NCBI GenBank assembly: GCA_013115145.1
Contig: JAAPAO010000142.1
Span: 1-63,689, forward strand
DNA: 63,689 nucleotides
Reading direction: 5' to 3'
DNA from: Perkinsus chesapeaki ATCC PRA-425
Taxonomy: Eukaryota; Protista; Perkinsozoa
The position numbers and the translations under genes were made by a program. The notes below the pieces were generated by a model that was not told the DNA's origin, did not search any database, and worked only from the letters and a program-made list of their open reading frames with translations. Shown here in pieces: positions 39,504 through 49,875 of the stretch; the stretch's first letter is position 1, and each line of letters opens with the position of its first letter.

Positions 39504-39678
39504 TGGCGCGCGGTCAGCTGCCGACCCTCATCAACGTACTGTTCCTTTTCACGTCCTACTCGACATTTACCACTAACGTATCGGCGGCTGGAGTCGCTCG
39601 GTTGCTTCCATAGTGGCTTTTGCCAGACCGTTGCGCTATGCCATGGGGCATCCTATAGTAGTTACTGTTTATCAATTT

Positions 39679-41858
39679 ATGGACTCTTCAATACCAACAG
39701 GGCCTCCGCCAGGCCTGGTGCCGCCACCACAGCAAGAGGCACCGAAGGAAGAGGCAGGGGAGAGCAAGAAGGAGAACAAGAAGCCTCGAGTGTGTCGGGA
39801 CTGGCGACGGACAGGCAAATGCCGCTTCGGCGACAAGTGCAAATTTGCCCATGTTAACGCGCCCGAGAAAAAAACGGAGAAGTCGGAGCCGGTGGAAGAA
39901 GAGCGACCGGCGAGGAAGGAGAAAAAGAGGCCGATTTGCCGGTACTATGCTGCTGGAAAGACTTGCAAATTCGGGGATAAGTGTCGATATCGGCATGAAT
40001 GCGTTGAGGAAGCGCAAGATAAGGCAAGTGAGCAAGTGAAGCCTATGCCGACTAGACTGGATGTGTCGGATAAGGAGCATGTAGTGAAGCTCGTGTCCGA
40101 TGGCTGGACTGTTGAAGAGGAGTTTATGAAGCTGGAAAGGATGTATAGGAATTCGGGCTACAAGAAGTCCGAGGGGGACGGTTTTGTCCGGGTGGATCTG
40201 GTGATGCAATGCACTGACCCGGACTTTAATAAAATGCTATATACTCCAGAAGGCATTCCGATGGCTGTGCTGCTTCCTCCAGCCTACACTGGTAGTGGGG
40301 AATACACGGAGGAGCTGAAGCTCATTGTGACAAAGATCAGCCCGAAAATGCCGAAGGCGGTGCGGATACTTCTGCCGGAGATTTTCGATAACTACTGTAA
40401 AGCTGTTGAGGCGCCGGTGAGCGTGTTCCGAGGCCTGCAGGGTGTAGAGAAATATATACCAAAGGTGTTCGAGGCTGCTGAAAAGAAGAAGGAAATTGGG
40501 GCGCTGACGAACGTACAGTGGGTGGAGTCCGAGAAGGAGAGGCTTGTCAAGGCTCTGGAGAAGTACTTCGAAGTTGATGTGGAAGATGGCAAATGGGAGA
40601 AGATATCAGATTATGTTGTCAGTCGAAGCGTGGAGGAATGCAAGGCTAAGTTTATAGCAATACGGCAGAGTTTAATCAAGGAGCAACAGCAGTATGAACA
40701 AGAGGAGGAGGAGGAGATATCTGACAGCGATGAGGAATCTTATTACAGTGATGATGAAGAAGAGGATGAGGAGTTGACGGATGATAATGCAGGGCAGGGC
40801 TGTGGGGGGCCGGATAATAGCTCTGAGGAGGCGGGTACGGAAAGCGATACCGACGAGCCTGGAGCGTTCACGGTTGATGATGTTAAACGGATAGGAGTGG
40901 TGGTAAAGCAGCCTCTGACGTCGATGACTGGCGTGTCGTTGGCCACCTGTGAATCTTGCGAAATTATTATTGCATGTAACCGATGCAGGAAGATGCGACC
41001 AATGGTGGTGGAGTTTGGGGAGGGTTCGGAACAGAGGGTCGTGAAGACAAGTGGAAGATGTCACACCTGCAGCCTTAGCAACACCATTTTCTCCGTACGC
41101 GAGCCGATGTTCCCGGGCAGCGACTTCACACTTTTCCGAGCAATTACGGAGTCGTGTACGATACTGCAAGTTGTGGAATGCACGCTTGAGATAAGATGCG
41201 AGGAATGCGATAAAGCAATACAGGCTCGGCATCTTAGAGCCGGCTACCGGAAGCAGGACAATTGTCAGGACTGCCACGCCAAGATGAACTTGGGCGTAGG
41301 ACAGCCCTCTGTGCCCAAGCCGGAGCATTTTATAGTTGCACCGGTAGTGAAGAAGACTCAGAAAAAGAAGCTGACTGACGATCCCAGGATAATTCCGGGT
41401 GAGTTGCGGTGTTGTGTTTTTGTGGTTCACTTTTCGTGGTCAGGAAAGCCTCTGCCCAAGAATGGTACTTGCAAGCATTACCGACATTCCTACCGATGGC
41501 TGCGGTTCCCGTGCTGTGGAATGGCCTATCCCTGCGATCAGTGTCATGACGCTGCATGGCCTGACCATCATGCCGTTTGGGCCAAGAGGATGATCTGCGG
41601 ATGGTGTGCAACAGAGCAGAACTTCGGGCCGGGCCCATGCCGGAAATGCGGCAAGCCGCTGAATAAAATCAGGACCAGGTAGGGGTTGGTAGGCGTTGGT
41701 GAAGGAGGTCCTTTGGCAGTCATTGGGAAGGCGGTGAAGGATGCCGTAACACCAGCGCTATGAGCAAGAATGATAAAAAGAAGTACGCTGGGAAGAACAA
41801 GACAATCAGTAGGAAGGCTGCAGCGGCTATCATGGCCGGCGGGAAAAAGAAGAAGTGA
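39679..41858 (+). CDS. 2x CCCH zinc finger + SANT/Myb + acidic tract + CHY-type zinc finger protein
   Basis: CRDWRRTGKCRFGDKCKFAH; CRYYAAGKTCKFGDKCRYRH; W..EKERLVKAL..WEKISDYVVSRSVEEC; CKHYRHSYRWLRFPCCGMAYPCDQCHD. Two 3' introns. Confidence 0.8.
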
Positions 41859-42550: not shown

Positions 42551-43288
42551 TCACAAGGGAATCTGTAATTCTCTACTGAATAGTTCGTGCTCTGCTTCCT
42601 TATCGAATAATGGATGGTACCATCCACGGAACTTGGCCGAGGCTACAATCTCCCAGTTGAAGATAGAGTTATTTTGGGTATTCAGGGAGAGGTCGAGCCC
42701 AACCGCCAGTCCCAGGTTGTTGTCGTCACCAGTAGACTTTTCAAGAGATACGACAAAGCCAAGGTCATAATCTGGACCGAAATGAGCATCAATGGCATCA
42801 GATATGCTAACACCGACGCCTTCACCAAATATGATAGCTACCCCCGAGACACCAACTCCAAAACTAGCATGCCAATAACCAGTCTCGGTGTTTAGTTTAC
42901 CGATACCCTCAGGCAATGCCTCAAAGCAAAGCCCAACTGTTCCTTCCAATACATCGTCGAAGCCTTCTTTGACGATGTTAGCGCAACCACCCCCGGTGAG
43001 GTTGAGACCAGTTGGGGTCGAGCCGTCGAATGATGCTTGGAAGTTCACATGGGTGGACTTAGAGGTGTCTTCGGTGTCGAAGAGGTAGACCGACAGATCA
43101 AGATGAAGGCCTTCTGTGGCGTCCAAGCCACCGGTAACACAGAAGATTTCATCATCGGGCTTATGCTCGGGTGTGCAGTCCTTAGGGTAAATACTGGCGC
43201 TTAAGCGGTTGGGGGCGAGTCGCCTGGAAGGTTCACGAGCGGCAATGGCAAAGCATGCCACGGGTAGGGTTAGAATAACGGTCTTCAT
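42551..43288 (-). CDS. Secreted beta-rich hypothetical protein, family copy 1 (245 aa, intronless)
   Basis: ATG at 43288; signal peptide then REPSRRLAP; clearly paralogous to copies 2 and 3. Confidence 0.85.
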   Translation of the reverse strand: MKTVILTLPVACFAIAAREPSRRLAPNRLSASIYPKDCTPEHKPDDEIFCVTGGLDATEGLHLDLSVYLFDTEDTSKSTHVNFQASFDGSTPTGLNLTGGGCANIVKEGFDDVLEGTVGLCFEALPEGIGKLNTETGYWHASFGVGVSGVAIIFGEGVGVSISDAIDAHFGPDYDLGFVVSLEKSTGDDNNLGLAVGLDLSLNTQNNSIFNWEIVASAKFRGWYHPLFDKEAEHELFSRELQIPL

Positions 43289-44199
43289 GATGACACAACG
43301 CGTGATGATGAAAGATATACCTGCTCTGTTGGTCCCTGACCATTGTTCATGCGTGCAGCTGTAGCTAAGTGCATAAGCCATATAAACGGGATATCTTCGT
43401 TTCGATCGCGTACTACGTATGAAAATAGCAGCTACGCATGTATGACTCAGGCCTACCGTTCATCAGTCGAGCTAGTAGCGAGAACGCCGTCTCCCTGCTA
43501 TGCTCGGAGCAAGCGTATCTTAGATGGAGCCGCTCTATACCGAAACTTGTCGACGAACAATTGGCTTTCCATAGGTGTCTGTCAACTACATCAATTAACT
43601 GACCCATCGTCGTCGTATAAGTTGGACCATTGTGTAACCCTGGGCACACACTGTTATATTGCAACTCAGGCGGCCGTTCAGAACGGCCCGTTCTGTTTAG
43701 CCCACGAAATACATTGTCGCGTATGAGGTGCTAATCCACAGCTAACTCCACGAACCTAAATTCACCTAGTGGATATCACGAACCATACTTGTATGATTCA
43801 CTTTTGACGAGATGACGTTGCCACGAGAGACCCGAGCACACTTTGAACGGTAGGGCTGAGGGGTATGAGGCTCGCCAAGTGTAGGTGTGTTGCGCAGGAA
43901 TCTAGGAACTCCAGAGGACTTCAGCGTCAAGAACGAAAAACAGTATATCTGGTACGTCAGGGTTCGCCGACTATAACGTCTGGAGAAAACTCTCTCTGAG
44001 TCGGCTTTCCTTCCCTATATTTCGCGCGCATAGTTATGAGAGATAGATCCAGGCAAACCCTTCGATGAACATTTAGACTCAATGTTCATCAAAGGGTTGC
44101 CTGGATGATACTCAATGATTGAGTCTCTCGATCGAGATGAACTGTTGGATCGGCTCTCCCAACGAAATGAAGCCGTTGGTGGGATCATCGGCACCGCAC

Positions 44200-46272
44200 G
44201 CAGAACTGAGCTTTTTTAGAATTCATGTTTGAGGAACCATAGAGGGAGCCTGTATTCCAGCTGTTATCACGATTGTCTGCTCCCACGTTAGGAGAAGAAC
44301 CAAAAACTTGCTCTTCATGTCGAATGACTATCTCAGCAAGACTACAACTCAGCACTCTTGGGATAGGTTGAACTAACATCACTGAGCCCCATTCAGCGAA
44401 AGTTCATGGTATGGTATATAGAGAGATAACCTTACGAGCTCGATGAGATTTGCCCATCACAGAAGGCGAGGGTGTGGCAGCGAGCTGGGAGGGAGGTGTT
44501 CCTACCAACTCTAAGGACAAGAGAAGGGGTCAAAGTGAGACTTACCAACATCCTCGTGCAAAGTGCTAAAATCAACGTCATTTGAATCTTCATATCTCCG
44601 GACCTAACGTATGAAAGTAAGACAAGTTGTTCAGGGAAGCATACCAAATATCTAATAAACCTCCATAGACAAAACACGGACAGGACACATATTATGCCCA
44701 CAATCCATAAGCGAAGGCTCTCCCCTTCTCTCTGTGAAATGGCGCTATTGTACAAAGCTTGAAGCCGTTCATCTTGACCAGTACCTGGGAAAGGGCAGCT
44801 AGAAAGAGCCTTCGAGGCGGATCCCATACAGACAAGAAATCCATTCACTTCAAGACGTTCGATTCGGCAAAAGTCAATTGAAAGGTCAGAGTAGTTTCGA
44901 TGAGTGAAAGACAGTGAACAGATCTTTGCCGGGTACCTGGGCATAGTGAAAGGGGTGCATCACTCAGCATAAAGTTGGTCATGATCTTACCGTCGGGCAG
45001 GAGGATCTACCATGCACTTTAGCTCGCAAGTTACCTCTATCTCTGCCGTTTCCAGGCCAGTGCAATTCCTTAAAACGAGAGCTACCGGCACATAGAAATG
45101 TATCACTTACTCCAGCGGCCTCCACGGCATGCGGAAGGTGTTAGTACTTGGTAAGCCTTGACAAGTAGATATGTTGTACCTAGCCATATAGTAGACTTCA
45201 GATTATATTCAGCAGAAGGAAGAAGACCTAGGTGGATGGTGACAGTTAAGTCGTTCGACTATTCGTAGCCTTGAAACTCCGTGAATCTCCTTCGACTGCC
45301 GGCTCCTGAGGTTGAGTCTTCAAGTCTTAGCGGGCTGAATGCATACACCATTGCTTCAAAAAGGTTTAAAGCGCGATATTTGATAATGATTGAGAATAAG
45401 GCCGTAAGCTTCTCACTGTGATGTACAAGTCCTTCCCGGCCTGGATCCATTATGTGACGGAAAAGGGGTCTCTGGGAATTGAGTGATGTCTGTTGCGGGC
45501 GACCCTTCTTGACGAGGGCAGCGCAGTGGAACCTTACGTGGTATCGCAATGAGAGATATCTCGAGATGAGAAATAACCAACGTTTATTAGCTGCATCTGT
45601 GGTCTCCCCGAGTAGGTAGGATAACTATAAAGCTCATCCTGAAACCCCAAGTCACCTGCCCTGAAGACCGCACACCATTGATCATGGATACTGCGAAGCA
45701 CCTACGGCTTTGGCTCGGAAGAAGGAATCTGGCTCGTGGGCATGTAGATGTGACTCGTTGCAAAAAATCCTGCGAGTGTAAGTTACGTCCTAACTTGCTA
45801 AACATAGTACTGGTGACTAGCAAGTGACACAAGAACGTCATTTGTCAACGGTTGGAAGGAGCTAACTCGCACAAACCGCAGAGTAGAGCTGTTGGACACG
45901 AGATATTACTATGAACCTCGAGTGTCCAGATAACAACGCGGTAATGAGCAGAGAGGCCTCAACGGCTGTCACGCCCGGAGGAAAAGGGAAAGTAACGACA
46001 AAGCAGCGATTTCCCGTCTTATGGTAGTGAATGTGATGATTTCCCGTCTTATGGTAGTGAATGTGCTGATTTCCCATCAGTGTAATGAAAAGGTATTTCT
46101 CCTGGTCAGCAGAAGCCTGTACTGACTGCCCCAATCTCTCGCCATTCCTCGAATCGACTAGATATCTCATACAAGCTGGTAACATAAATCTCAAATACTG
46201 ACGGGACTTCACGTTACATCCAGAAAAGGCATCGAGTAGCCTCTCCCACAGAATGGAGAGCGTTTCAAGCAC
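44200..46272 (-). CDS. Possible multi-exon hypothetical membrane protein
   Basis: Exon-like segments and a hydrophobic LWIVGIICVLSVFCLW stretch; structure unresolved. Confidence 0.25.
46008..46075. repeat. 30-bp tandem duplication (about 2.3 copies)
   Basis: gatttcccgtcttatggtagtgaatgtg(a/c)t repeated. Confidence 0.85.
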
Positions 46273-47019
46273 GTCAAGGACATGTCATAGCTATGTATTC
46301 TCGCGAACCTTTCAAACGAAAGGCTCAGGGAAGGCTCTCAATTGTTGCCATAAGCGTGGCTATTTTGGTTTGTTTAGTGGTAGTCTACCCCTAGTAGATA
46401 CTCCTTGCCGATGCCACAGGTTGGCCCTATCATACCAATTGCACAACCGATCACAGCGTGTGCGCGAGTCGCGCAGCGCGACTCAGACGTGCTCGGCGGA
46501 GTACTGGGGCGGAGAAGTAATTGTTTCGATGGTTCGGAGTCGAAACACTGTAGACCTGAGTGAAGCTATTCATTCAGTGTGGGTGCACCTTGACGAGTGA
46601 ACGGAGATGAGTACTGGGAAGGACTCATATCCCGATGAGAGAAATACGAAGCAGCATTATCACATGGTCAGATCTCACTGTAGACGGGTTACTCGGCGAG
46701 AATCATTGTGTTTGCTGTGGTATGAGTAACAGAAACTCAACCCGAAAGGCATAAATCTAGTTAATACTGTCGTAGACAAGGATGCGGCCCAGTCGTGACA
46801 CAAGAACCTTACTGATGAACTTCACCTGGCCAAAAGCATTTATGACATAAATTGGAGCTGTACGACTGTATTGAATAACAACAATCGTGGAAAGTGCAGG
46901 GATTGGAAATGTGGCTACACAAGACTAGGGTCACGCACAAGGTTCAACAACGCTCGTGGGCATCTTGCCAAAGGTGACCTATCTCAAATATAAGACCCTT
47001 ATAACAATAGACAAACAGC

Positions 47020-47760
47020 TTATCTCAGCGGGATCTGGAATTCCCTATTGAATAGGACGTGCCTTGCTTCTTTATCGAAGAGTGGATGGAACCATCCACG
47101 CAACTTGGCAGTGGCGGCCAGCTCCCAGTTGAAGAGAGATCCATTTTGGGCATTCAGGGAGAGGTCGAGCCCAACCGCCAGTCCCTGGTTGTTATCGTCA
47201 CCAGTAGACTTCTCAAGAGATACGACAAAGCCAAGGTCATAATTTGGACCGGAATGAGCATCAATGGCATCAGATATGCTCACACCGACGTCTTCGCCAA
47301 ATATGGTAGCTGCCGCCGAGACACCAACTCCAACACTAGCATGCCAATAACCAGTCTCGGTGTTTAGTTTACCGATACCCTCAGGCAATGCCTCAAAGCA
47401 AAGCTCAACTGTGCCTTCCAATACACCGTCGAAGCCTTCCTTAACGACGTCAGCGCACCCACCTCCAGTAATGTTAAGCCCAGTTGGGGTTGACCGGTTG
47501 AACGATGCTTGAAGGTCTAAATGGGTGGACTTGGAGGTATCTTCCGCATCGAAGATGTTGACGGATAGATCGAGGCGAAGGCCTCCCGAGCCGTTCAGGT
47601 TGGCGGTAACACAGAAGATTTCGTCTTCAGGCTTCTGCTCCGGTGTACAACCCTCCGGGAAAGCTATGGTGGCCAAACGTCTTGGGGCGAGTAGCCTGGA
47701 AGGTTCACGAGCAGCAATACCAAAGCATGCTACGGCGATGAACAGACCCGGCAGTTTCAT
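47020..47760 (-). CDS. Secreted beta-rich hypothetical protein, family copy 2 (246 aa, intronless)
   Basis: ATG at 47760; signal peptide then REPSRLLAPRRLA. Confidence 0.85.
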   Translation of the reverse strand: MKLPGLFIAVACFGIAAREPSRLLAPRRLATIAFPEGCTPEQKPEDEIFCVTANLNGSGGLRLDLSVNIFDAEDTSKSTHLDLQASFNRSTPTGLNITGGGCADVVKEGFDGVLEGTVELCFEALPEGIGKLNTETGYWHASVGVGVSAAATIFGEDVGVSISDAIDAHSGPNYDLGFVVSLEKSTGDDNNQGLAVGLDLSLNAQNGSLFNWELAATAKLRGWFHPLFDKEARHVLFNREFQIPLR

Positions 47761-49134
47761 GGCAGCAAGTGCTATTCTGGAGAAGGGCTGATGTTTAAGG
47801 GCTGTCTTGGGGCAGGCGTGCAACTTTGGCTGTAGTTCGCTGCATACGCCGCCGGAAGCTTTACGAGCCGAAGCGCACTAGAAAGAGCCCCAATGACCTC
47901 GCGGAGCTTCGCCCTGAGTGGACTTCGGGCAGTATAAGTGTTACGCTATTCTGGAGAAGCAGAACACCATTCATACGAGTCTCGCTGGGAGGGCGGGAAG
48001 CGGCTGTTCCTATCATGAATAATGCTACTAGGCTGTGCTTAGAGTATGCTGGCCTGACCACAAGCTGCTTCTCTCTAATCTTGAGGCCGTCTCCCGCCTC
48101 CTACTAAATATATGCCATACTCTTATGACAGAGGTTAATGGGCGATGCATAAACAAATTCTATATAGCAGAGAGGTGGCGCGCGATCGCTAAGTTAGCTA
48201 TAGGGGCACACATGGCCCAGAGCAGCCTAGTGGCCCTTTTGTTTATCTGACCAATCCTTAATCTTCAATAATCAGAGTTCCGCGATTTCCTTCGCTAACT
48301 TCACTTCATTCGCTGACCAACTACCCCGTGGCCCCTATGCAGGGTGAGTAGGATAATCCTACTAGGATTCCTACTGTAGGAGATGGTAGACTCGTTATGA
48401 TGTCCGGGAGAGGCATACTGCTCGCTCAGCTTGTCAACCATACAGTAAAACGGATGTCTTCACTTCTACAGTAACATCAATCGGATACCGGACTTGACTC
48501 TCGAGGAATAGATAATCTACTGGCTCCAATAGAATAGCCAATGTACTCTTATGTGGTTCGAGGGACCAATAGATTCAAGCGGTTTTCGATCACCGATCGC
48601 ACCAGTACTACTGAGTCAGCCGACCCATCGGGATTATCTATAGTAAGAAAAGACTGAGCCATCGAGTCAATAGCTCGGTTGCCAACTGACCCAATCGCAT
48701 TGATAGGATTGGCGAGTACTCCCTTCGTGGCCCAAGGAAGAAGATGGTTGCCTACCGGTATATCGCGGCAGTAAGCGTTACATGTTTCAAATTCCGTGAT
48801 ATCGGTATCGCGGCGATACTATCACCCAAGCAAAACTCTGGTGCATCACTTCCACTACGGATTCCGCAGTAAGGGAAAGCGGCGTACTAACTCAATAAGC
48901 ACAGTTTAGTAGGTAGACTGACAAACTGACCAGCAACTGTGTCGTTACCAAGAAAAGGGTGAGCTATGACATCAGAACTTCTTCAAACAATAGTTGCCAA
49001 CTATAACGTTGGGGAAACAAACTAGCACACACTCAAATTGCACACCTTCAACGACTACACGAGATTGTCGATAACGCCAAATGTGTGGAAAATGAGTGTT
49101 ACATTACAGAAAAAATATGAGCTATGAGAGAGTA

Positions 49135-49875
49135 TTATCTGAGAGGAATTTGAAATTCCTTTTTGAACAAATCAAACTCCTTCTCCTTGTCAATGAAAGG
49201 ATGGAACCACACACGAGCTTTCGCTTTCGCCGCAAGCTCCCAGTTGAAGATGGTGTTATTTACAGTGTTCAAGTCCAAACTAAGCCCAGCAGCTACGCCC
49301 TGTCTTTTCTTCGCCTCGGTAGACTTCTCAAGAGATACAGCGAACCCGAAGTCGAAGTTCGGACCGAAATGGACATCAACAGTATCGGAGGTGCCGACGT
49401 GGTTATCTTTACCGAAAATGGTTACCGTACCCTCAACAGAAGCTCCAAGACTAGCATGCCAGTAGCCAGTATTGGGGTCAAGCTCGCCGGTTCCCTCGGG
49501 TGACGGCTCAAAGCAAAGCTGCACTGTGCCTTCCAACACCCCGTCGAAACCATTATTGAAGACATTAGCACACCCACCTCCGGTAATGTTAAGACCAGTT
49601 GGGGTTGACCCGTTCAGCGATGCTTGAAGGTCTAAATGGGTGGACTTGGAGGTATCTTCCGCATCGAAGATGTTGACCGATAGATCGAGGCGAAGTCCTT
49701 CCGAGGCGTCCAGGTTGGCGGTAACACAGAAGACTTGGTCATCGGGCTTGTTTTCCGGTGTACAGCCCTTAGGGTAAGTGATGGTGGTCAAACGTCGGGG
49801 GCCAAGTAGTCTGGAAGGTTCACGAGCAGCAATGGCAAAGCATGCTACGGATAGAGACAGGCCGTAGAGTTTCAT
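49135..49875 (-). CDS. Secreted beta-rich hypothetical protein, family copy 3 (246 aa, intronless)
   Basis: ATG at 49875; signal peptide then REPSRLLGPRRLT. Confidence 0.85.
   Translation of the reverse strand: MKLYGLSLSVACFAIAAREPSRLLGPRRLTTITYPKGCTPENKPDDQVFCVTANLDASEGLRLDLSVNIFDAEDTSKSTHLDLQASLNGSTPTGLNITGGGCANVFNNGFDGVLEGTVQLCFEPSPEGTGELDPNTGYWHASLGASVEGTVTIFGKDNHVGTSDTVDVHFGPNFDFGFAVSLEKSTEAKKRQGVAAGLSLDLNTVNNTIFNWELAAKAKARVWFHPFIDKEKEFDLFKKEFQIPLR

Follow-up and report, generated by a model that had tools for sequence, protein, structure and literature searches.

Within a 63,689-nt stretch of DNA from the clam parasite Perkinsus chesapeaki ATCC PRA-425 (GenBank assembly GCA_013115145.1, contig JAAPAO010000142.1; the whole stretch is referred to here as the window), positions 42551–49875 carry three intronless genes in tandem. 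We found that these three copies are under purifying selection and encode stand-alone C-terminal domains of the Pfam family DUF6740 (PF20525) behind a secretory-type leader. Our preferred interpretation, which we regard as rather probable, is that the products are secreted glycoproteins in which the DUF6740 beta domain stands alone, with a hydrophobic sheet face for lipid or membrane, and that they are possibly trimmed at an R-x-L motif. Perkinsus species kill oysters and clams, and little is known of their secreted proteins.

The coding sequences, their leaders and their RRL motifs are located in the window as follows. Each coding sequence was assigned from its open reading frame (ORF), the conserved Met-Lys start and a match to PF20525; leaders were identified by inspection and RRL motifs from the sequence.

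42551–43288, minus strand: copy 1, coding sequence of 245 amino acids plus stop, a stand-alone DUF6740 C-terminal domain protein
43217–43225, minus strand: RRL of copy 1 (residues 22–24), five residues upstream of the site in copies 2 and 3
43238–43288, minus strand: leader of copy 1
47020–47760, minus strand: copy 2, coding sequence of 246 amino acids plus stop
47674–47682, minus strand: RRL of copy 2 (residues 27–29)
47710–47760, minus strand: leader of copy 2
49135–49875, minus strand: copy 3, coding sequence of 246 amino acids plus stop, the copy that was modelled
49789–49797, minus strand: RRL of copy 3 (residues 27–29), directly before beta-strand 1 (28–34) and aligned with the R-x-L of long family members
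49825–49875, minus strand: signal-peptide-like leader of copy 3 (residues 1–17)

Conservation among the three tandem copies

The three ORFs are continuous, without introns, and their products have pairwise protein identities of 63–72%, in line with the original prediction, which had described a cluster of intronless paralogs here. The Met-Lys starts at 43288, 47760 and 49875 are conserved, and in the alignment the sequence upstream of them is not conserved among the copies. By tblastn there are exactly three copies in the window; in that search, the 3.7-kb spacer that separates copies 1 and 2 gave no sign of a further copy, intact or decayed. For all pairs of the trio, the ratio of nonsynonymous to synonymous substitution rates (dN/dS) was 0.19–0.34. 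Therefore, all three copies are under purifying selection.

Nucleotide identity among the copies is a mosaic in which blocks of 90–95% stand beside blocks of 60–70%, and the gene flanks do not align. Copies 1 and 2 are 90–95% identical in the 3′ half of the genes, and copies 2 and 3 share one 5′ block with 95% identity. The mosaic, together with the unalignable flanks, points to old duplicates that have been homogenised by gene conversion.

The database forms of copy 1 (245 residues, P0003) and copy 3 (246 residues) are short proteins. The GenBank model of copy 2 (FOL47_001733, P0002, a hypothetical protein) has 383 residues and was probably extended too far. The paralogs do not share its extra N-terminal part (window positions 47761–48170, minus strand), which would place the putative signal peptide inside the protein. 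Another short paralog (P0005) is encoded by a 1027-nt contig from a Joint Genome Institute (JGI) sample, which has a 10-nt 5′ end before the Met-Lys start, a 3′ untranslated region and a terminal A-run. This contig looks like an mRNA, with the same short architecture and Met-Lys start as the trio.

Leader, cysteines and glycosylation sequons

The leader, the AAREPSR(R/L)L stretch that follows it and the four invariant cysteines of the mature proteins, all of which had been pointed out from the sequence, were present in each copy. The leader consists of Met-Lys and ∼15 hydrophobic residues ending in AIAA or GIAA, with small residues at −3/−1 (A-I-A/A). The invariant mature cysteines are at positions 38, 50, 102 and 121 in copy 3 numbering (contexts CTPE, FC, GGGC and LCF), and a fifth cysteine is located in the leader. 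The spacing suggests that the mature cysteines could form two disulfides. Copy 3 has sequons for N-glycosylation at N88 and N96, which are kept in most short members, and at N206; all are in or beside predicted strands.

Two other destinations were considered for these proteins. A glycosylphosphatidylinositol or membrane anchor was ruled out, as the C-terminus is polar. A bipartite plastid leader was rejected because the spacer is too short, with only ∼10–15 residues between the leader and the confidently folded domain where a transit-like extension needs ∼25 or more, and because the mature disulfide-type cysteines and sequons point to the secretory route.

The trio within the DUF6740 family

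The family had been thought possibly undescribed; the trio in fact belongs to a family already in Pfam, of which it holds the C-terminal domain only. The curated gathering cut-off of PF20525 is 27 bits (profile length 532), and the trio scored 49 (copy 1), 60.3 and 73.3 bits, with E-values of 3.6e-13, 1.4e-16 and 1.6e-20 for copies 1, 2 and 3, respectively. The matches cover only profile positions ∼309–510 (313–510 for copy 1), the rest of the profile being absent. A six-frame scan of the whole assembly confirmed these matches. The same scan gave no match to the DUF6740 N-terminal domain on the window's contig; on this ground, and because the transcript of the paralog begins at Met-Lys, we rejected the idea that upstream exons add such a domain.

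The profile search for family size revealed a large family, found in Perkinsus only. In the P. chesapeaki assembly, the six-frame scan detected at least 30 full-length DUF6740 genes (open frames of 540–625 residues, scores up to 738 bits) and about nine short, C-terminal-only genes in five loci, trio included. The six further short genes encode ∼245–265 residues; three are in tandem on contig C2797 and one each is on C3499, C2594 and C3398. A seventh, weak match on contig C2928 is a 124-residue fragment at the contig end. When a profile of short and long members (alignment A2) was searched against 1.84 billion representative proteins, 67 clusters were obtained. Nine of the ten clusters looked up were from P. 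chesapeaki, P. olseni or P. marinus; the tenth was a giant bacterial repeat protein, which we took for a spurious, composition-driven match. DUF6740 therefore appears to be restricted to Perkinsus. We found no mention of DUF6740 in the literature, and a paper on the mitochondrial complexome does not mention the P. marinus relatives.

The trio shares with the full-length proteins (∼550–600 residues) the F-x-[FY]-P-x-x-C anchor, the second cysteine, the G-C-A and L-C motifs and the C-terminal tryptophans, and both forms start with a putative signal peptide. In contrast to the full-length proteins, the trio lacks the N-terminal domain and the linker (profile positions 1–300), so that little separates the leader from the R-x-L before the beta domain, and it scores 48–73 bits where the long members score 300–740 bits.

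One distant short relative in P. chesapeaki (P0042; FOL47_003925, 295 residues) carries the UniRef name ‘Mitochondrial import receptor subunit TOM40B’. Given its signal-peptide-like start and its DUF6740 C-domain anchor, this name looks like an automatic mislabel.

Predicted structures of short and full-length members

An AlphaFold2 model of copy 3 built on alignment A2 (ma27845bc90ad) had a mean predicted local distance difference test (pLDDT) score of 82.9 and a predicted template modelling (pTM) score of 0.77, with low confidence in the leader (pLDDT below 50) and spacer. The model is all-beta, with ∼12 strands of 8–20 residues. One strand face averages +2 to +4 on the Kyte-Doolittle scale and the other −1 to −2.6, and the long alternating strands proposed from the sequence thus recur in the predicted structure. 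Most strands are amphipathic; the last strand (228–242) and strand 156–171 are polar or charged on both faces.

An exhaustive VIA search with the short model gave Z-scores of at most 5.8, the hits being pieces of outer-membrane barrels and microsomal triglyceride transfer protein (MTP; 184 residues, Z 5.6). Against the ESM Atlas, template modelling (TM) scores of ∼0.4 were obtained to Omp85, FadL and ApoB, and fungal DUF7029/DUF7223 proteins appeared as sub-threshold leads (0.77–0.79). Lipid-binding sheets of the MTP, ApoB and vitellogenin kind were thus represented among the structural matches by MTP and ApoB, to which the C-domain sheet aligns weakly and non-specifically.

The model of a full-length member (alignment A3; pLDDT 77.7, pTM 0.51) has three parts. 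The N-terminal domain (residues 1–230) matches LolA, the ependymin-related EPDR1, RseB and LppX with a Foldseek probability of 1.0 and E-values of 3e-4 to 1e-2, and residues 1–232 match 2yzy with a VIA Z-score of 10.6. The linker (∼230–315) is poorly predicted. The C-terminal domain (327–528) has eleven long strands and matches segments of outer-membrane barrels with Z-scores of 10–13.8. Its best matches by root-mean-square deviation correspond to half of 22-stranded transporter barrels (188–198 residues at 2.9–3.4 Å; FecA, 188 residues at 2.9 Å). We read these barrel scores as architecture and not as kinship, because any long antiparallel meander scores in this way.

A LolA/ependymin/RseB/LppX-like N-terminal half is predicted for the long DUF6740 proteins in general (L001:1501–3087, minus strand, and loci L002–L030) and seems not to have been recorded for this family. 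The predicted LolA-like fold is what links the long members to the LolA, LppX, RseB and ependymin-related carriers; the trio is without that domain.

An R-x-L motif at the N-terminal boundary of the beta domain

Each copy has one RRL shortly after the signal, as the original prediction stated. The motif regions read SRRLAPNRL in copy 1, SRLLAPRRL in copy 2 and SRLLGPRRL in copy 3; copies 2 and 3 thus have PRRL, and copy 1 has SRRL with PNRL at the second site. The RRL lies only ∼5–14 residues past the likely signal-peptidase site.

RRL is not conserved across the whole family, an outcome that the original prediction had named as one that would refute it. The motif is present in seven of the nine close P. 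chesapeaki paralogs, i.e. the trio and the four genes on C2797 and C3499, which read L-[SY]-L-R-R-L-D, and in two P. olseni proteins (P0004, LPRRLAP; P0031, TTRRLVP). No RRL occurs in L033 and L034, both short P. chesapeaki paralogs, in P0005, in the P. marinus relatives (LRRA in P0034) or in more distant short relatives. Among the long members, one clade, recognisable by A-K-x-x-Y ... T-K before the anchor, is without the motif.

In alignment A2, the RRL column coincides with an R-x-L of the long members that precedes the invariant F-x-[FY]-P-x-x-C anchor by five residues. To be compared with the counts that follow, which are over unique but related sequences and are not independent events, R-x-L occurs in 3.2% of random windows and RRL in 0.7% in the same proteins. 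Where the domain start is internal, R-x-L was found no more than 12 residues before the anchor in 22 of 38 cases (26 of 38 if R-x-M is included). Where the domain start is N-terminal, it was found within that distance in 13 of 33 cases, and RRL in nine of 33, or ten with copy 1 of the window, which was missed by the automatic anchor. Nine long members have R-x-L-x-[EQD]. In the long model, the motif (R-Q-L, 301–303) falls within a predicted flexible linker just ahead of the beta domain, where pLDDT is below 50. The first strand of the short model begins with R28-L29, and the block they belong to has a mean pLDDT of 60.

The flanks vary while RRL stays, the RRL of copy 1 is shifted as though one RRL had to remain, and the column matches the R-x-L of long members, which together argue that the motif is not noise. 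Judged from these alignments, R-x-L would be an ancestral feature of the N-terminal boundary of the domain, kept when the signal peptide was joined directly to it, and not only a post-signal tag. A short linear recognition motif and a structural cap are both compatible with the data.

A gene for a plasmepsin V-type protease

RRL after a signal peptide is the Toxoplasma form (TEXEL, Toxoplasma export element) of the motif cut by ASP5, related to the PEXEL (Plasmodium export element) cut by plasmepsin V. The assembly has 126 six-frame matches to the A1 (pepsin-like) aspartyl protease family PF00026, a very large expansion, with many of the genes in tandem (e.g. on C2084, C2394, C2860, C3213 and C47). 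Only one locus passed the cut-off of TAXi_N, a model matched by nepenthesin- and plasmepsin V-like enzymes: C3082, 23850–25800, plus strand (L054:1408–3351). Another A1 protease, L052, was considered as plasmepsin V-like and ruled out, being cathepsin D-like by comparison with the PDB.

The gene on C3082 has at least three coding pieces, and a hydrophobic membrane anchor is encoded at the end of the last exon. When the pieces were searched one by one against solved structures, the best relative of each was plasmepsin V (8tyf, 4zl4), with E-values of 5e-9, 0.02 and 5e-8; BACE2 and conglutin gamma were far behind. The alignment shows the plasmepsin V-specific P-x-Q-R-I-S ... C-x-x-C-x-N-C-G-x-H-x-x-x-P-F. 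Both catalytic aspartates are kept, in the signatures D-T-A and D-S-S as against D-T-G and D-S-G in plasmepsin V. By its sequence, then, the genome has one plasmepsin V/ASP5-type gene, encoding a candidate protease whose activity is uncertain given these signatures. The search for an ortholog of ASP5 or plasmepsin V that had been suggested was thus successful in that a gene of this type was found, but its catalytic motifs are non-canonical.

As a control, 17 A1 proteases bearing signal peptides were examined for RRL near the N-terminus, and one had it (L051). This gene (L051:364–2841, plus strand; C3082, ∼50.9–53.3 kb) encodes an 806-residue A1 protease with a signal-peptide-like leader and T-R-R-L-A-D at residues 44–49, which fits R-x-L-x-D.

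Explanations of the motif and of the beta domain

The motif may be purely structural, capping the first beta strand with its Leu in the hydrophobic face and its Arg in a salt bridge, with the N-terminus as left by signal peptidase. We regard this as a serious contender that falls a little short of an even chance. A cap would account for the nearly fixed distance from the motif to the F-x-[FY]-P-x-x-C anchor (2–5 residues in short members and 5 in long ones), for the regular hydrophobic pattern L-x-x-L-V-x-F after it in long members and for the position of R28-L29 at the start of strand 28–34, and it is consistent with the motif being dispensable in several family members. However, the residues after RRL in short members are Pro/Gly-rich (DGPTP, APTP, VPGS), unlike those in the long ones, yet RRL is kept; the motif segment of the long model is at low pLDDT; and the move of RRL by five residues in copy 1, where the old site has decayed to NRL, is hard to square with one fixed contact. 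That move speaks instead for a TEXEL/PEXEL-type cargo, as does the retention of RRL in seven of nine close paralogs and two P. olseni relatives despite differing flanks. Here a plasmepsin V/ASP5-type protease would cut after the Leu of RRL in the endoplasmic reticulum (ER) or Golgi once the signal peptide is removed, and the new N-terminus would route the protein, as an effector, to secretory organelles or, beyond the parasite vacuole, into the host hemocyte. RRLAP, RRLAT and RRLTT in the trio fit RRLxx (TEXEL) and not RxLx[EQD] (PEXEL); the latter form is seen in the nine long relatives, and R-x-L stands at the homologous position in more than half of the long members, in a linker of low confidence. 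A single TAXi_N-type, membrane-anchored A1 gene with plasmepsin V as the best match in all three exons, and the rarity of RRL near the N-terminus of the control proteases, also favour this explanation. Against it, L033, L034, P0005, the P. marinus relatives and one entire clade of long members have no RRL; a cut so close to the signal-peptidase site would free a tiny peptide only; R28-L29 are already in the first strand of the short model; the candidate protease has DTA/DSS; and the counts come from related sequences. This parasite is a perkinsozoan and not an apicomplexan, we found no literature tying Perkinsus to PEXEL, TEXEL or plasmepsin V, and export into host cells is without any support. 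We consider the cargo explanation unlikely. Processing at R-x-L by a plasmepsin V-type enzyme is in itself doubtful to about the same degree or slightly less so, and export into host cells is considerably less probable than either. Alternatively, a kexin/subtilisin-type enzyme could remove a propeptide at the dibasic RR, as happens in many fungal secreted proteins; Perkinsus is known for secreted subtilisin-like proteases. All three copies and the LRRLD group have RR, and LRRA in P. marinus P0034 is dibasic without the Leu. In the long members, however, the motif is mostly non-dibasic (RQL, RHL, RAL, RKL, RCL, RVL) with the Leu conserved, and RQL, RHL and RAL suit an R-x-L-specific enzyme better than kexin, which makes a kexin site very improbable.

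The beta domain itself might be a membrane-inserting beta-barrel or pore-former, alone or oligomeric, that acts on membranes of the parasite or the host. Bacterial outer-membrane barrels are indeed its best structural matches (CymA and OmpG, Z 12–13.8), the barrels of TonB-dependent transporters superpose at 2.9–3.4 Å over ∼190 residues, Omp85 and FadL are reached at TM ∼0.4, and the strands, of 10–20 residues, are strictly amphipathic for the most part. The likeness lies in an all-next-neighbour antiparallel meander of long amphipathic strands; there is no sequence relationship, and the Perkinsus proteins are eukaryotic and of the secretory type, with disulfide-type cysteines. Against a barrel, several strands, the last among them, carry high charge on both faces, conserved N-glycosylation sequons are within strands, no pore-forming-toxin family was matched in Pfam or the PDB, and Z-scores of 10–14 are usual for a long antiparallel meander compared with barrels, the short model reaching only 5–6. 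The likeness to outer-membrane barrels is a structural analogy, not family membership, and we think a barrel or pore-former improbable, though less so than a kexin site.

In the interpretation we prefer, the trio would be tandem, gene-converting paralogs of a short DUF6740 subfamily, each encoding a cleavable ER signal peptide, a spacer of 10–15 residues with one RRL, and the C-terminal domain alone. This domain of ∼215 residues would form a meander of ∼11–12 long antiparallel strands, probably with two disulfides, and would carry the conserved sequons; one sheet face would be hydrophobic and the other charged or polar. Full-length members would set a LolA/ependymin-like domain of lipid-carrier type before the same beta domain. 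The short proteins would be soluble and secreted (or located in a vacuole or wall space), and their hydrophobic face would hold lipid or dock on a membrane, with a possible role in host lipid uptake. RRL would have been kept from an ancestral R-x-L that stands where the domain begins in much of the family, and would be either a maturation site for the Perkinsus plasmepsin V-type protease or a mere domain cap. We favour a lipid or membrane function because of the amphipathic strands, the lipid-carrier-like partner domain of the long members and the sterol requirement reported for P. marinus (PMC2868825).

Several points weigh against this interpretation. The signal peptide was judged by inspection alone, and neither transcript nor protein evidence was found for the three window copies themselves. 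The fold class of the short proteins rests on predictions; a Foldseek search of the PDB with the short model gave no convincing relative (TM below 0.2), and the sheet may close into a barrel, form half of one or fold into a sandwich, with its hydrophobic face on either side. As far as the proteins themselves are concerned, lipid binding is suggested by the domain partner of the long members and by amphipathicity alone.

Other features of the window

The 3.7-kb spacer between copies 1 and 2 contains a 30-nt tandem repeat (46008–46075; 2.3 copies, 97% matches), which sits within a 136-residue ORF of doubtful reality. Next to the trio, on the plus strand, a 689-residue ORF (39613–41682) encodes two CCCH zinc fingers and a C-terminal CHY zinc finger, with a weak Myb/SANT-like match below the Pfam cut-off; it is unrelated to the trio.

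Implications for Perkinsus and the DUF6740 family

That these genes encode hypothetical proteins and that the family is in Pfam was already known. The subfamily that has the C-terminal domain only, the structural outline of DUF6740, the R-x-L at the domain boundary and the perkinsozoan plasmepsin V-type gene with altered signatures appear to be undescribed. DUF6740 would thus gain a first structural outline, in which the models place a lipid-carrier-like N-terminal domain before a large amphipathic beta sheet. The beta domain also occurs on its own, in a form that is under purifying selection and, in at least one paralog, apparently transcribed.

The R-x-L at the beta-domain boundary might be the recognition site of the Perkinsus plasmepsin V/ASP5-type protease, in which case PEXEL/TEXEL-style maturation would predate the Apicomplexa and operate in Perkinsozoa; we offer this as a tentative and rather unlikely proposal, and the finding would be of high interest only if it proved true. 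A cut at R-x-L would then separate the LolA-like half of the long members from their beta-sheet half and trim the short proteins, which might act at the interface between parasite and hemocyte, and the origin of a protein-maturation pathway of malaria parasites and Toxoplasma would be open to study in a free-living-like, culturable relative. If the link between motif and protease is false, the family would still be a candidate for host-lipid capture in a parasite that is reported to need dietary sterol.

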